Assembly (NCBI RefSeq): GCF_000143415.4
Contig: NW_003314429.1
Coordinates: 62,001-126,000, forward strand
Direction: 5' to 3'
Origin: Selaginella moellendorffii
Lineage: Eukaryota > Plantae > Lycopodiophyta
Length of the DNA stretch: 64,000 nucleotides
The translations under genes and the position numbers were made by a program. Position 1 is the stretch's first letter. Each line of letters starts with the position of its first letter. The notes beneath the pieces are model-generated. The model saw only the letters and a program-made list of their open reading frames with translations. It was not told the DNA's origin and searched no databases. This document shows, in pieces, positions 11,862 to 44,682 of this stretch.

Positions 11862-14800
11862 ATGGCAGCCAGGAGTGGAGGCACTCGGCTCCACTGGCTC
11901 GCGGTGATTCAATTCGTGGCTTTGGTGGCAACCGTGGGCAATGCTGCAACGCCCGCACTAGCAGAAGCTGAAGGAGGCGCTGAAACCAAGACTTACACTT
12001 ACAGCTCTCCACCACCGCCATCACCGGTTTACGAGTACAAGTCTCCCCCTCCGCCGGTCTATGAGTACAAATCGCCGCCCCCCCCTCCGCCGGTTTACAA
12101 GTACAAATCGCCGCCACCTCCTCCGCCTTACTACTACAAATCTCCGCCTCCGCCTCCTCCCTACAAGTATGAATCGCCGCCTCCGCCTCCCTACAAGTAC
12201 GAGTCGCCGCCTCCACCACCGTACTACTACAAATCACCTCCGCCGCCCCCATACAAGTATGAATCGCCGCCGCCACCACCATACAAGTATGAATCGCCGC
12301 CGCCACCACCATACAAGTATGAATCGCCTCCTCCACCACCATATAAGTACGAATCGCCACCGCCACCACCATACAAGTACGAGTCGCCTCCTCCACCTCC
12401 GTACAAGTATGAATCGCCTCCTCCCCCACCATACTACTACAAATCACCACCACCACCTCCTTACAAGTATGAATCTCCCCCTCCACCTCCATATTACTAC
12501 AAATCTCCACCCCCGCCACCACCTTACTACTACAAATCACCACCACCACCTTCTCCTGTCTACAAATATAAATCTCCACCACCACCACCTTACAAGTACG
12601 AATCTCCTCCTCCACCTCCATACTATTACAAGTCTCCACCACCACCGCCGTATTACTACAAGTCTCCACCACCACCACCTCCAGTTTACAAATACAAATC
12701 TCCTCCTCCGCCACCATATTACTACAAATCACCACCTCCTCCATCACCAGTATATTACTACAAATCTCCTCCTCCACCAGCGTATTACTACAAATCTCCC
12801 CCACCGCCTGTCTACTATTACAAATCCCCGCCACCTCCAGCTTACCACTACCAATCGCCACCCCCACCAAGTTACAAGCTGGTAGTGGTCACGGGCAAGG
12901 TCTATTGCAACAGATGCTGGAACACCACAAGCAGATACCTTCAGGCATCACCACATGGGTCTGCTAGGTACATTCTCAATTGCATTGTATTCGATATTGT
13001 TCTCCTCACTCATTTCCTCTTGATACTGTGTGCAATAATGCAGGTGGCAAAGTGAAGATCACATGTGGCGAATCTTACTACTACGGCTACACCAACAAGC
13101 ATGGAATCTTTAGAATTGAGCTCCCGCACCAATCCTGGGAAGAAGCAAGCAGCTGCAAGGCCAAGATTATCAAGAGCAGCTACATCAAGTCGTCATGCAA
13201 TGTCATCACGGACTACAGGTCTGGTGCAACAGGGGCCAAGCTCAAGTTCAAATCGAAAACAGAGAAGGAGCTCGTCTTGACAGCCGGTCCTTTCATCTAT
13301 GCAACTCCAGAGCCATCGTCAGTCTGCTTCTACACATCACCTCCCTATGAGTACAAGTCACCTCCGCCACCAACACCGGTCTACCATTACGCCTCTCCGC
13401 CACCTCCGGTCTACTACTACAAATCGCCACCTCCTCCTTCACCGGTTTACTACTACAAATCCCCTCCTCCTCCTTCGCCGGTCTACTATTACAAATCCCC
13501 GCCTCCACCACCATACTATTACAAGTCCCCACCTCCACCTCCGCCTAAGTATTACTACAAGTCGCCCCCACCACCGTCTCCATACTATTACAAATCCCCG
13601 CCCCCTCCACCGTACTATTACAAATCCCCACCACCACCTCCCTACAAATACGAATCGCCGCCGCCTCCTCCTTACAAATACGAGTCCCCACCTCCACCAC
13701 CTTACTATTACAAGTCCCCACCACCACCTCCATACAAATATGAATCCCCGCCACCTCCAGTCTACAAATATGAGTCTCCGCCACCCCCAGTTTACAAATA
13801 CAAGTCGCCACCACCACCATACAAGTACGAGTCACCACCACCACCTCCATACAAGTATGAATCCCCGCCACCTCCACCTTATTACTACAAGTCCCCTCCA
13901 CCACCACCATACAAGTACGAGTCGCCACCACCTCCTCCGTACAAGTATGAATCTCCACCACCACCAGTTTACAAATACAAGTCACCTCCGCCGCCACCTT
14001 ATTACTACAAATCCCCACCGCCACCTCCATACAAGTACGAGTCTCCACCTCCTCCTCCGTACAAGTATGAATCTCCACCACCACCACCTTATTACTACAA
14101 ATCCCCCCCGCCACCTCCATACAAGTACGAGTCACCGCCTCCTCCTCCGTACAAGTATGAATCTCCACCACCGCCAGTTTACAAATACAAGTCACCCCCG
14201 CCACCACCTTATTACTACAAATCCCCGCCACCACCTCCATACAAGTACGAGTCTCCACCTCCTCCTCCGTACAAGTATGAATCTCCACCACCACCTCCTT
14301 ATTACTACAAATCCCCGCCGCCACCTCCCTACAAGTATGAATCCCCGCCACCACCTCCCTACAAATACGAGTCACCTCCACCACCACCTTACTATTACAA
14401 ATCTCCTCCACCGCCTCCATACAAGTATGAGTCGCCACCACCACCAGTCTACAAATACGAGTCTCCGCCACCCCCAGTTTACAAATACAAGTCGCCCCCT
14501 CCACCTTATTACTACAAGTCTCCGCCACCCCCGCCATACAAATATGAATCCCCACCTCCACCTCCCTACAAGTATGAATCGCCTCCTCCTCCACCTTACT
14601 ACTACAAGTCCCCTCCACCACCTCCCTACAAATATGAATCCCCGCCACCACCTCCCTATAAATACGAGTCACCACCACCACCACCTTACTATTACAAATC
14701 TCCTCCACCGCCTCCATACAAGTATGAGTCGCCACCACCACCTCCCTACAAATACGAGTCACCACCACCACCACCTTACAAGTATGAATCCCCACCTCCA

Positions 14801-34456: not shown

Positions 34457-36050
34457 ATGAAGGATTCCGCCAAAAGGTTTCTCCTCCTCCCTTTCTCCGG
34501 CCTCCTGCCATCGTCAATCTGCGTCCTCCTCGCCGCCGCGCTCGTCTTCTTGGCAGCTCTCACGATCCCAAACCTGGGACTGGGATTCTCACCGCCGCTG
34601 GAGCTCCTCCTCATCCATCCCTACGCGCCGATCGCTCAATCGCCTGGGAATCTCTCCACCGCCGCGCCACCGAGCGATCCAGGTAGCCGATCGGTGCCAA
34701 ATCTTGCTCAAAATATTTCGGTGCCAGCTCGAGGAGGAGGAGGAAGAGGAGGAGGAGGAGGAGGAGGGGATTCCATCGATCGCGAGGCGCGAGTGTGCGA
34801 TCTCTACACAGGCAAGTGGATGCCGGATCCGCGCGGTCCCCTGTACCGCAACGATGCGTGCCCCATTCTTTCGCAGGCACAGAACTGTCAAGGGAATGGA
34901 AGGCCGGACAGAGATTACGAGTCTTGGAGATGGGTGCCCGATGGCTGCGGCCTTGCGCGCTTCAACGCCACCGAGTTCTTGCGCATCATGCGAGGCAAGG
35001 TCCTGGGATTCGTGGGCGATTCCGTGGCCAGGAACCAGATGGAATCGCTCATGTGTATCCTAATGCAGGTAAGAGGATCGTTCTAGCTCTTCTTGCTTCT
35101 CGCTTTCCTGGATTGATCTAGCTAGTTCTCATTTGCTTGCTCTCCTAGGTAGCCAGTCTCGATCGCGATCAATGTAGGTACTCTTTTTCCTGATCGGAGT
35201 AGTAGATGCTAGATGGTTTTTTTTCCTCTCTTTCTCTCGATCGCGGACTAACTGTGAGCTTCGATTACCACACCAGGTGGAGAACCCCGTGAACAAAGGC
35301 AATAAGAGGATGCAACGCTGGTTTTTCCGCTCGAGCAAGGTCACCATCGTCCGGATCTGGTCGTCATGGCTGGTGAAATCCACACCCGGCGACGCCTCGG
35401 TGAAGAGCGCAACGAGAATTCACATCGATCAACCCGACGCCAACTTCATGGACTTCCTTCCCAGCGTGGACGTGCTCGTCATCTCGTCCGGCCACTGGTT
35501 CGTGAAGAAGTCGGCGTTCATGCGGGGTGGCCAGGTGGTGGGAACTCAGGGGTGGCACAGGCCGAACGCGACCATGACCACCAGCAAAGCCTTCGCAGCG
35601 TCCATGACCACGGCCCTCACCGCCATCGCCGCCAGCCGGAACTACAAGGGACTCACGGTTTTTCGGACGTTCTCGCCGGATCACTACATCGGGGGGTCGT
35701 GGAACACGGGAGGGTCGTGCACGGGGATCACGAAGCCTCTCACGGACAACGAGGTGAAAAGGATTGGCAGCAGCGTCTTCACGAGCGAGATGAGGCGGAT
35801 CCAACTCGAGGCGTTCGCGGAGGCGAAGAGGAACGCGAGCGGAGGAGGAGCCAGGCTCGTGCTCATGGACGTGACTCGGGTGTTTGAGTACCGGGCAGAC
35901 GGGCACCCGGGATCGTTTCGAAGCAAAGATCCCAGCGGCAAGGTGGCGGCGCAGGACTGTCTCCACTGGTGCATGCCTGGACCTGTCGATACGTGGAACG
36001 AGTTTTTGCTCCACATCATCGTCACGCACAAGATCAACACGGCGGCTTGA
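34457..36050 (+). CDS. Trichome birefringence-like (TBL) polysaccharide O-acetyltransferase, TBL17/18-like
   Basis: Exons 34457-35068 and 35277-36050. N-terminal TM, CDLYTGKW, QNCQGNGRPD, FVGDSVARNQ, DGHPG and DCLHWCMPGPVDTWN. Confidence 0.92.
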
Positions 36051-41212: not shown

Positions 41213-42632
41213 TTACCAGTGACGTCGTAGTCTCACCCACGCCACGGCACCGACCACCGCGCCGCCCAGATGGCCTACGTGGCTTATGGTGGATGCCACC
41301 TGGCAAGCAGACAAACAAGCAAGCCATTAGAGAACGCTTCCCAAAACTTTGGAAGAAACCACGCAAGAGAACTTACATCGGAAACTCCCCACAAATCCTT
41401 GAGGATCATGTAAGCTCCCTGTGGAGTGAGCGATCGCGTCAAATTCTCACAGCATTGGAATGGGAAAAACAAAAACTTAGGAAAGATCGATCGCTTACAA
41501 ACAGGGCAGCTGGGACTGGGAAGAGGAAATCGACCAAGATGACGCGCGTTGGATTGAGCATGATGTTGAGGACCACCAGCGCGTTGATGGCTCCACTGGC
41601 GCCCTGTGGAAAAAACGTGTCGCGCATCAAACAGCACGCGAGAGATAGAGGAAGATCACGCTTTTCTCTCGACTCACCAGCGCTGGTGGGACAAATCGGG
41701 CCACAAAGGTGCTGTGACGAAGCCCCTGGGAAAACCAAAAAATGTGAATGACGATACGAGGATCCAGAAGAAGAATCGCTGCGCTTTTATCGAACCTTGA
41801 GCCAGGGATAGATGTAATAGCTATAAGCCAAGTGTCCGAAGGAGCTAACGAGGCCACCCGCAAAGTAGATCATGTAGAGCCTTTTGCTGCCGAATCTATA
41901 AGCGATCTGCGAAGCGGAGTGAGCACGCGAGAGAGAGCGAAGATCCGGATCGAAAGAGAACAGGAGAGATCACAAGACCTCGGTGCCAAAAAAGTATAGG
42001 CCGAGTAAGTTGGATGCCAAGTGCCAGAACTCGTTGTGGCTGAAGAAGTTTGTGACGAGAGTGTGGAGTCGGCCACTCAACACGTTGTGCATGGAGATCT
42101 GAGTGTCACAATTGTCACGAGAGAATTTCTAGCAAAAGAAAAAGAGAGAAAGAAACCGACCGTGAAATGCTCGGTCATGAAAACCGGGTCGAAAACCTTC
42201 CACAGGAAGAACACCGAAACGTTGGCACCGATCAAAGTCCACAAAGCAACATCGGGTCGAGCGTATCCTCCACCCCTGATAGAGTTCCAAGAAAAATAAA
42301 CATCACCCTCGAAGAAGATCATAGAAGATCATAGCATAGGAAAAAAACGATCTTTGTTACCCTGGCAAGCGGCCGAGGCTGGAGTATCTCCAGCGCTGCG
42401 AGAAGCGATTCACAAGCCGGTTCCATTCTCGCACGGCGGGCTGCAACTCGGCTGGGATCTTGAGCTTGCTTCCCTGGAAACTTGTCCGAAACTGGCTGCT
42501 GCTCGTCCGCGTCGCGTGAATCCAGCAAGTGAGAGGCCGCCATTCGGTGCTCGTGGCGATCTTTGATGTGCCCAAGAAACCACTCACGCTCGTCTTACCA
42601 GCGGTCGCACAGATTCTGCGCACTGCCGCCAT
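41213..42632 (-). CDS. Rhomboid-like intramembrane serine protease (PARL/RBL12-like, probably mitochondrial)
   Basis: LIGANVSVFFLW, FMTEHFT, catalytic GASGA, and last exon ISHVGHLGGAVVGAVAW...RRHW*. The N-terminus is basic and presequence-like. Confidence 0.85.
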
Positions 42633-43050
42633 TTCCACCCTAAACGAAGACCAAGCTTTTGGAATTCCAGGAAACCTTTGTATTGTTTTGCAGTCTCGAG
42701 AGAACGAGAGTTCGCTCCAAATTCCACCATTTCGTTTCCTCTCCCGCGGAATTGGAGAGCGAAAAGAATCTGAAAGGTTGGCACCGATTAGAAAAACTGG
42801 CTTTTTGGTTCGAGGAAGCCTCACACGCTATGAGATAGATCGAGAGATGTCCGCTGTTCCTTCCAGAAACTTAGATTTTGGAGAGAAGAACAATGCAAGT
42901 GGAGAACTTCTTGTGCTGGATCATTGCTTTCGAATTCGCGCTTTTTATTTACATCGATTTGGCGAAGAACATCATGGGAGGATTGGATTCGTGTTGTTGG
43001 TGGAGTGGCATTGGATTTGGAGTGACGAGACGAGGAGCTTGTGTGTTTTC

Positions 43051-43252
43051 CTAGCCCTGATCGCTTCGCGTCCCAGTGTTCGTGGAGGCCGATCTTCTCC
43101 TGTGCCTTCCGCGTCTACGCCTCTGCGAAAAAAGAGATTTTTGAGTCAAGTTCCACTGGACGATTGGGTGATCTTACTCCTCGCCCTCGGCGCCGCCTCC
43201 GCCGGCGCATCAAAGAGGGGCTTGTCGACGCTGTTCTTGCGGGTCGCACCAT
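43051..43252 (-). CDS. Putative 48-aa arginine-rich, protamine-like peptide (two exons)
   Basis: Exon 1 43252-43178, 55-nt intron (GTAAGA...TCTCTTTTTTCGCAG, 43177-43123), exon 2 43122-43051. Product MVRPARTASTSPSLMRRRRRRRGRG/RRRRGRHRRRSASTNTGTRSDQG*, 19/48 Arg. Confidence 0.55.
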
Positions 43253-43340
43253 TTCTCCTGTCCTCCCAAACTCTAGCAATGCTTCGCCATAGTTTTCTCC
43301 AGCAATGTATATCCCCGGAACAGCCGCGACCCTTGGATCT

Positions 43341-43393
43341 GCCACGTCACTGATTAGATCAGCCACGTCAGCGATCCCCGGAACAAAACCCTA
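43341..43393. promoter_or_regulatory. Two GCCACGTCA boxes, the second resembling the plant histone type I element, plus a telo-box
   Basis: gccacgtca at 43341 and 43362. CCACGTCAGCGATCCCCG versus consensus CCACGTCANCGATCCGCG (one mismatch). AAACCCTA at 43386-43393. Confidence 0.5.
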
Positions 43394-43465
43394 GGCTCGT
43401 ACGGAGCTTATTAACTGGAGTTTTAAACTCTTTTGGGCGAGGGAGGAGCGAGGAATAGATTCGGC

Positions 43466-44682
43466 ATGGGGAGCGCGCGGCGGCCCAAGAATCCCATCCA
43501 GGCGCTCGTCTGGAGGATCCAGCGCCAGAATCCCCGCGTCAAGGCCGCGCTCCTGGCGCTGGCGGCAGTGATTGGGATCGTCTTCCTCAGGTATGTCGTC
43601 AAGGATCACGACACCCTCTTCGTCGCCTCCGAGTGCGTCCACGCCCTGGGGATCGTCATTCTCATCTACAAGCTCCAGAAGGAGAAGAATTGCGCCGGTA
43701 AGGATCCATGGAGCGATCGATCGATTCGATCGCTCATTAGCTACAGCTAGGGCCGCGTCAAATCACTTAAATAACTTTCTTACAAGTGTGTGTTTCTCGT
43801 GTTTCTTAGGTGTGTCTTTGCGATCGCAGGAGCTTACAGCGATTTTTCTTCTCGTCCGGCTCTACTGCTCCACTTTCATGGAGCAAAACATCCACACTTT
43901 CCTCGACACGGCCACGCTCCTCGTCACGGCCTGGGTGATTTATATGATCCGGACCAATCTCAAGGCAACTTATGTCCAGGAACTCGATAACATGCCACTC
44001 TACTATGTGGTAAGCTTTGTTTTTCTCGTCCGGGACTTGAGTTCTATCACTCCTTTTTGGTTTTCCTTTCAGCTGGCTCCATGCGCAGTGCTCGCTATCC
44101 TGGTTCATCCTCTCATCCGGTACCACCTTATCAACAGAGTTTTGTGGGCGTTTTGTGTGTATTTGGAGGCCGTCTCCGTGCTGCCTCAGCTTCGGGTGAT
44201 GCAAAAGGCTAAGGTAGGCCAATTCTCTATGTTTCTTCGCTCACTTATCTTGGATTTGATCCACAGCTTATAGAACCCTTTACTGCGCTCTACGTTTTCG
44301 CCCTTGGGGTTGCAAGATTTATCAACTGTGCGCATTGGCTGCTCCAGGTATGAATCTCATTGCAAGACAAGAGGAAGGTCATGTAAAAAAACGCATTTTT
44401 CTTCTCCTTTTGCAGCTGATAGATGGACGTGGCTACCTCTTCTACACGCTGGGAACGCAGCTCAAACACCGGAGCTTGATTCCTTATGGCTTGTGGCCTG
44501 CCATGGTTGTGGTCGCCGAGATTGTCCAGACATTCATCCTTGCCGATTTCTGCTACTACTACGTAAAGAGGTATGGATCAAAAGAAGAAAAAAGCCATTT
44601 TTTCCATGAAATTTACGATTTCTTTGTTTGTGACAGTGTGGCGGAGGGCCAGATGATGATCCGGTTGCCTTCAAGTGTCTAG
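43466..44682 (+). CDS. ERD2-related (ER lumen protein-retaining receptor family) membrane protein
   Basis: LIYKLQKEKNCAGVSLRSQELTAIFL, LWAFCVYLEAVSVLPQL and VAEIVQTFILADFCYYYVK. Confidence 0.9.

Follow-up and report, generated by a model that had tools for sequence, protein, structure and literature searches.

An unannotated two-exon gene between an ERD2-like gene and a rhomboid gene of Selaginella moellendorffii, most likely encoding a tiny arginine-rich micro-protein

Whether a short, extremely arginine-rich reading frame is a gene or a by-product of base composition is the question raised by the minus strand of one intergenic interval in the lycophyte Selaginella moellendorffii. A sequence-only reading of the window, by which we mean the whole 64,000-nucleotide stretch of DNA that was analyzed, had proposed that a minus-strand ATG at 43252 opens 25 codons ending at a GGA/GTAAGA donor, and that a 55-nt intron and a phase-0 exon follow. 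It had offered two roles for this arrangement, namely a stand-alone sperm nuclear basic protein gene or an Arg-rich upstream open reading frame (uORF) in the leader of the rhomboid gene. The matter therefore comes down to whether the predicted RNA exists, whether its frame is coding, what kind of peptide it would specify, and whether the transcript is its own or merely the beginning of a longer one.

The unit lies on scaffold GL377733.1 (GCA_000143415.2) at about 105,051-105,340 on the minus strand, the scaffold coordinate being the window coordinate plus 62,000. On one side is the ERD2-like gene, read from the plus strand (ATG 43466; gene call of 284 aa), which matches the Pfam model ER_lumen_recept with an E value of 1.6e-24, and on the other is the rhomboid gene, read from the minus strand (ATG 42632; gene call of 299 aa), which matches the Pfam model Rhomboid with an E value of 5.4e-6. 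The annotation of GL377733.1 has no protein-coding call in the interval between these two genes, and neither the exact 48-aa peptide, nor its 34-aa form, nor the unspliced ORF is found in a collection of 15 billion proteins, so that the unit stands without protein-coding annotation. The list of open reading frames for the window likewise holds the unspliced read-through only, at 83 aa, as the earlier reading had remarked.

Contigs from four public sequencing runs were placed on positions 41500-44500, and three of these runs, from three studies, are RNA-like (X10 from study P2, X4 from P1 and X3 from P3). Read again with these contigs at hand, the sequence agrees with the proposed two-exon structure, which comprises the following parts.

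43253 to 43340, minus strand: 5′ leader of the micro-transcript; spliced contigs extend to 43340 (X4) and 43317 (X10), which is a minimum extent, the true start lying perhaps slightly further upstream
43178 to 43252, minus strand: coding exon 1, 25 codons, MVRPARTASTSPSLMRRRRRRRGRG; from translation, with the end set by the RNA joint
43123 to 43177, minus strand: intron of 55 nt, GT..AG, phase 0; skipped in the X10, X4 and X3 contigs
43051 to 43122, minus strand: coding exon 2, 23 codons plus TAG, RRRRGRHRRRSASTNTGTRSDQG and stop; from translation, with the start set by the RNA joint
42920 to 43050, minus strand: 3′ UTR; RNA contigs run down to 42975 and AATAAA lies at 42949-42944, the probable end being near 42920

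The start codon (43252-43250) sits in the context GAGAAATGG, which is favorable in having A at -3 and G at +4. The last codon of exon 1 is the GGA at 43178, the intron (43177-43123) reads GTAAGA...TTTTTTCGCAG, and the frame closes at the TAG at 43053-43051, about 100 nt 5′ of the AATAAA. Translation of the spliced frame returns the peptide that had been proposed: it is 48 aa long, 19 of its 48 residues are Arg (40%), and the proportion rises to 17 of 34 when counting begins at the second Met. Each of the six Arg codons occurs (CGA 4, AGA 4, AGG 4, CGC 3, CGG 3, CGT 1). The predicted product would weigh 5.7 kDa and carry a net charge of about +18; it lacks both Lys and Cys. An intron of 55 nt is typical here, the introns of the neighboring genes being 53-112 nt in size. 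The branch-like TTGAC motif that had been pointed out within it is indeed there in the window haplotype; it is polymorphic, reading CTCGAC in the other haplotype, and so the motif holds for one haplotype of the two. The leader contains a uORF of 5 codons, MAKHC, which runs from an ATG at 43290 to a TAG at 43273 in a strong context (AAAACTATGG). Its stop lies 20 nt before the main ATG, and a strong uORF placed this close upstream means that initiation at the main ATG should drop.

The first question, that of the RNA, has a clear answer. Every intron of both neighboring genes is spliced out in X10, X4 and X3, and these runs are therefore RNA in practice; the fourth run, X17, contributes one unspliced contig (42564-43212, depth 2) and is DNA-like. 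In all three RNA runs, and hence in three studies, contigs join 43122 directly to 43178, skipping 55 nt bounded by CT..AC on the plus strand, which is the exact splice that had been predicted. Since CT..AC on the plus strand is GT..AG on the minus strand, the transcript strand is fixed as minus. The depth in the bin 43116-43216 equals that expected of fully spliced contigs, so the intron is without coverage, and unspliced forms of the transcript were not seen in X10, X4 or X3. The spliced contigs span from 43340 to at least 42975, and three SNPs in the 3′ UTR (43006, 43025 and 43038) reveal that both alleles are expressed at roughly equal depth, with allelic contigs reaching 42975. Contigs of this kind do not give transcript ends, tell strand only through the splice dinucleotides and are unreliable as to expression level; it is with this in mind that the depth of the micro-transcript in X3, 68.8, should be set beside the 32-50 and about 105-150 of neighboring genes, contig depth being a poor measure of expression. 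About 20 public runs, drawn from at least 7 studies, contain part of a 311-nt stretch around the ORF. The micro-gene is thus a real, separately transcribed and spliced RNA of Selaginella moellendorffii.

Whether this RNA encodes anything can be approached through the second assembled haplotype. The allelic locus on GL377705.1 (L003) has the same gene order, and the whole interval between the start codons of the two neighbors was aligned for this one haplotype pair. The differences between haplotypes are distributed as follows.

Micro-gene coding exons: 0 of 147 nt (exon 1, 0 of 75; exon 2, 0 of 72), 0%
Micro-gene intron: 4 of 55 nt, including a 1-nt indel, with the splice sites kept, 7.3%
Micro-gene 5′ leader: 4 of 88 nt, 4.5%
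Micro-gene 3′ UTR: 5 of 131 nt, 3.8%
Promoter: 5 of 125 nt, 4.0%
Gap to the rhomboid ATG: 6 of 287 nt, 2.1%
Coding exons of the neighbors: 10 of 1318 nt, 0.6-0.9%
Introns of the neighbors: 24 of 659 nt, 2.4-4.7%

With the UTRs together differing at 9 of 219 positions and the non-coding part of the transcript at 13 of 274, the absence of any difference in the 147 nt of coding sequence is significant by Fisher test in two comparisons, one with the rest of the transcript (p = 0.0034) and one with the entire intergenic region (p = 0.0088). Within the unit, the longest runs free of differences are 43039-43142 and 43166-43256, which correspond to the coding exons, their splice signals and the 4 nt that precede the ATG. 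The closest differences on the upstream side are at 5 and 8 nt from the ATG, and the closest on the downstream side is 13 nt past the stop. Because these runs track the boundaries of the ORF, the constraint follows the ORF and not the exons as such, which is what coding sequence predicts and what is hard to explain if the ORF is a by-product. On this one haplotype pair the micro-ORF thus appears to be under purifying selection. A coding region with zero differences yields no dN/dS and does not separate synonymous from non-synonymous change, so that the constraint could also act on the RNA, for example on splicing enhancers. The leader uORF is retained in the other haplotype as MATHC, its TAG being present despite a 2-nt deletion there, and the leader is otherwise variable.

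Two observations on the neighboring genes are worth recording in their own right. A 2-nt indel between the haplotypes at 42693-42694 places an upstream ATG of the rhomboid gene (~42730, minus strand) in frame with the coding sequence in GL377705.1 (a 331-aa model; L003 4328-5824); in the window haplotype, with its 299-aa model, this ATG begins an ORF in another frame, overlapping the start. The rhomboid RNA in X3 comes from the 2-nt-deleted allele, and its contig ends at 42716, short of the ATG at ~42730. Over intron 1 of the ERD2-like gene (43697-43808, plus strand), X3 has a contig, 43670-43822, which is unspliced, carries 3 SNPs and is covered less deeply than the spliced exons; it may reflect a retained intron or else pre-mRNA from the other allele.

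Composition provides a second line of evidence on coding, and here the individual signals have to be sorted with care. The 48-codon frame is the longest ATG ORF of the micro-transcript, and ORF length was set aside as evidence of coding once ATG ORFs of at least 48 codons proved to occur in 849 of 2000 dinucleotide-shuffled versions of the transcript (42%). Density of arginine, unlike length, is more than chance: the Arg core has 16 Arg in 20 codons, and no other frame in the 64 kb exceeds 13 in 20. Within the core, 19 of 20 codons have G at position 2, and position 3 is mixed (G 8, A 7, C 4, T 1), and the Arg frames of exons 1 and 2 coincide only once the 55-nt intron has been removed. Arg-rich frames as such are plentiful in the window, which has about 21 tracts where Arg fills 9 or more of 20 codons, and they are common because they arise as by-products of GC- and purine-rich DNA. 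The second-richest of them, at 13 of 20 (34702-34812, plus strand), is an off-frame of an (AGG)7 microsatellite, which in its true frame specifies a run of Gly within exon 1 of a PMR5N/PC-esterase (TBL-like) gene. This tract is the best look-alike in the window, where no paralogue of the micro-gene was found. A microsatellite origin for the Arg run of the micro-ORF was considered and rejected, Tandem Repeats Finder having reported no tandem repeat at that site. The sequence-only reading had argued the same from the use of all six Arg codons; codon diversity by itself does not discriminate, given that other 5-codon Arg runs use 3-4 codon types. A separate observation concerns the minus-strand frames at ~12030-14600 of the window, where periodic Arg-rich or RRRR-F/V-V/L-V frames extend over about 2.5 kb and suggest a minisatellite-like tandem array.

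Searches for relatives were uniformly negative. When the 48-aa peptide was scanned against Pfam-A with hmmscan at E ≤ 10, the sole model to appear was Spem1 (E = 7.9), whose 6.3 bits lie below its cut-off of 27 and amount to noise, and a word-indexed search with the same peptide gave nothing at E ≤ 0.1. In a phmmer search of 1.84 billion representatives, the unspliced 45-aa ORF had a single match, an 888-aa tandem-repeat ORF aligned over 12 weak stretches, which was judged spurious as a homologue. Two neighboring genes were used to look for the syntenic interval in other species. For the exon-1 ORF of the ERD2-like gene, no relatives were found within the length range searched. An intronless neighbor on GL377733.1, annotated as “adenylate kinase [Selaginella moellendorffii]”, retrieved S. 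moellendorffii itself, followed by plants at about 50% identity, with no other Selaginella species among them. If the micro-gene is coding, then the lack of detectable relatives makes it an orphan micro-protein gene.

The strongest competitor to a coding reading, one that we regard as possible but doubtful, is that the ERD2-like promoter fires in both directions and gives rise to a short, spliced, polyadenylated long non-coding RNA (lncRNA) in which the Arg ORF is a by-product, the constraint on the exons acting on RNA or DNA through splicing enhancers or promoter-proximal elements. This account draws on the spacing of the two transcription units, whose contig 5′ ends (43340 for the micro-transcript and 43441 for the ERD2-like mRNA) are only about 100 nt apart, as well as on the non-significant ORF length, the strong uORF just upstream, the absence of a homologue and the frequency of by-product Arg frames in the window; moreover, 4422 lncRNAs have been reported for S. 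moellendorffii (PMC5310277). It fits less well with the pattern of haplotype differences, since the difference-free stretches match the boundaries of the ORF rather than those of the exons, and the exonic leader and 3′ UTR vary like introns. A non-coding RNA would also not be expected to carry a period-3 Arg core that stays in phase across a splice. Nor does the RNA look like a structural one: the spliced transcript has no significant secondary structure (MFE z = -0.16), and Rfam gives no match at E ≤ 1 on either strand of 42600-43500. Finally, the micro-transcript in X3 is comparable in order of depth to the neighboring genes, rough as this measure is. Weighing these points, we hold with moderate confidence that the locus is an unannotated stand-alone two-exon gene, most likely encoding a tiny and very basic Arg-rich micro-protein.

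If the product is a micro-protein, one may ask whether it is the sperm protein that had been envisaged. Fish protamines are about two thirds Arg, and liverwort protamines are described as H1-derived. The proposal of a stand-alone sperm nuclear basic protein of protamine type, condensing chromatin in the flagellated sperm of a lycophyte, has some appeal in that the peptide is short, with Arg clusters, Gly spacers and Ser/Thr-rich flanks, and is encoded with one small intron as in fish and mammalian protamines, and in that the gene appears real and constrained. There is also a precedent in Marchantia, a land plant with motile sperm, in which sperm chromatin is packed by protamines (PMC8566409). 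Against this, a true protamine would be expected to be germline-restricted, and yet the RNA occurs in all three RNA runs, with parts of it in the about 20 runs mentioned above. Two published RNA-seq papers for S. moellendorffii sampled roots, stems, leaves, strobili and similar sporophyte organs and make no mention of sperm or antheridia (PMC5310277; bioRxiv 10.1101/744326), the runs used here being not matched to these papers. The 48-aa peptide matches no protamine or linker-histone Pfam model at E ≤ 10, and its 40% Arg falls short of the fish proteins. An origin from an H1-type precursor does not describe the locus either, for the 48-codon ORF is bounded by its own ATG and TAG within a transcript of ~0.35 kb and has no H1/H5 globular domain. 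A role as a sperm nuclear basic protein or protamine is accordingly unlikely, and it has no support, because the RNA turns up in runs from at least 7 studies and there is no similarity to protamines or H1; judged from the sequence, what the peptide shares with protamines is no more than its composition. We consider the protamine proposal extremely improbable. A variant in which a genuine protamine-type protein, standing alone and with no H1 ancestry, packs lycophyte sperm chromatin while its transcript is stored or leaky in the sporophyte is very unlikely too, and if it were true, the peptide would represent an independent origin of protamines in vascular plants.

There remains the relation of the micro-transcript to the rhomboid gene, whose ATG had been placed about 420 nt downstream and in fact lies 419 nt from the micro-ORF stop, on the same strand. 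The three RNA runs have a coverage hole in common, with zero coverage at 42813-42913 and essentially none at 42717-42812. A coverage hole by itself proves nothing, and this one carries weight because the same hole recurs in three studies and the DNA is covered in another run, the DNA-like X17 contig extending across this region. On the far side of the hole, the rhomboid RNA contigs end at 42638, 42655 and 42716, and ends that vary in this way fit a transcription start and not a splice site. None of the three RNA runs has a contig, joint or loose end bridging the micro-transcript (42975) and the rhomboid unit (42716). Taken together, the shared hole, the rhomboid contig ends and the lack of a linking contig indicate that the transcript is separate and is not a rhomboid leader, and the evidence that it is a unit of its own, about 0.35 kb long, is good. 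The suggestion that the transcript might stand alone and end before 42632 finds support in RNA contigs that run down to 42975, in the hole at 42717-42913 and in the AATAAA that follows the micro-ORF. The alternative, that the micro-ORF is an Arg-rich and possibly stalling uORF in a long rhomboid mRNA leader, had its strand and its distance from the rhomboid ATG to recommend it, is already largely refuted by the three observations just given, fares no better for a micro-transcript to rhomboid depth ratio that ranges from about 0.1 to more than 1 across runs (by rough contig depths), and now deserves next to no credence.

What survives of the earlier reading is therefore its structural part, that is, the splice and the separate transcript, to which a difference-free ORF can be added. 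An independent, processed transcript with an ORF of fewer than 100 codons is one mark of a short ORF (sORF) or micro-protein gene, and that mark is present here.

Under the micro-protein gene reading, the following picture emerges. A short minus-strand RNA of ~0.35 kb starts about 100 nt from the divergent ERD2-like start, is fully spliced at 43178/43122 and is not joined to the rhomboid mRNA, all of which is shown by the contigs. Its 48-codon ORF would be translated, at a level that the 5-codon uORF probably damps, into a 5.7-kDa peptide with a net charge of about +18, which would be kept by purifying selection. To judge from its composition alone, the peptide would most likely bind RNA or DNA in the nucleus or nucleolus, as other Arg-rich peptides do. 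Expression is seen in ordinary, probably sporophytic, RNA samples and would not be confined to sperm.

The regulation of such a gene would presumably begin in the ~100-nt interval 43340-43441, which we take to be a shared bidirectional promoter. Two sites in it stand out from the window motif count and the haplotype alignment.

43341 to 43349, minus strand: first TGACGTGGC box
43362 to 43370, minus strand: second TGACGTGGC box, 21 nt from the first

These are the only two copies of TGACGTGGC in the 64-kb window, where 0.36 would be expected by chance. The boxes are UPRE-like with an ACGT core; their cores are identical in both haplotypes, and the dinucleotides directly 5′ of each core differ. 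The plant unfolded-protein-response element contains the complementary CCACGTCA. The mammalian UPRE has been given as TGACGTGG/A (PMC3645738). On the strength of these motifs the boxes may place the KDEL-receptor-like gene and its divergent partner under unfolded-protein-response control, which we regard as a lead, and a translated poly-Arg micro-protein might be co-regulated with a KDEL-receptor-like gene through two UPRE-like boxes. A 13-nt insertion/deletion between the haplotypes lies at ~43380, just upstream of the boxes and inside the shared promoter.

The wider meaning of the locus is partly methodological. An unannotated two-exon gene was predicted from raw sequence, its exact splice was confirmed by public RNA, and constraint was found to be confined to the 48-codon frame; the annotation of S. 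moellendorffii misses spliced micro-genes, and the two assembled haplotypes amount to a ready-made constraint test for candidates of this kind. Long poly-Arg runs are known to be translated poorly, which is a point against the coding reading. If the frame is translated, the locus would offer a compact model for the translation and tolerance of poly-Arg peptides, and for the origin of orphan genes beside bidirectional promoters.

Several known systems can be set beside the Selaginella unit. The resemblance to protamines (vertebrate P1, salmine and clupeine) extends to short length, Gly-broken Arg clusters, Ser/Thr-rich flanks and one small intron, whereas the Selaginella peptide has no match to a Pfam family, no Cys and a lower Arg fraction, and its RNA is found in the ordinary samples of many studies. 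The protamine-like proteins of Marchantia, described as coming from a male-germline H1, are likewise Arg-rich, basic and found in a land plant with flagellated sperm; the Selaginella ORF differs in having neither an H1 globular domain nor a larger precursor, being a complete unit of 48 codons.

A different kind of parallel is provided by eL41, a tiny ribosomal protein of 25 aa that is mostly Arg and Lys. By analogy, both would be very short, extremely basic and ubiquitously expressed, encoded by a tiny gene of the sort that is often missed, and presumably RNA-binding. The two share no sequence similarity, however, and the Selaginella peptide has no Lys, has Gly residues that would break any long helix and has no link to the ribosome. 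Divergent lncRNAs share with the Selaginella transcript a start about 100 nt from an opposite coding gene, a short length and splicing; they differ from it in that the Selaginella constraint follows the ORF and not the whole exons and that the contig depth in one run is near that of neighboring mRNAs.

The closest comparison is with the sORF micro-proteins of plants, of which translated examples have been catalogued in the moss Physcomitrella (PMC6724668). As in those cases, an ORF of fewer than 100 codons resides on its own short transcript, was missed by annotation, has no homologues and came to light through transcript evidence combined with constraint. The predicted Selaginella product is more extreme than they are and, if translated, would be an extreme case within the plant micro-proteome: a peptide that is 40% Arg, with a charge of about +18, encoded by a tiny gene of its own.
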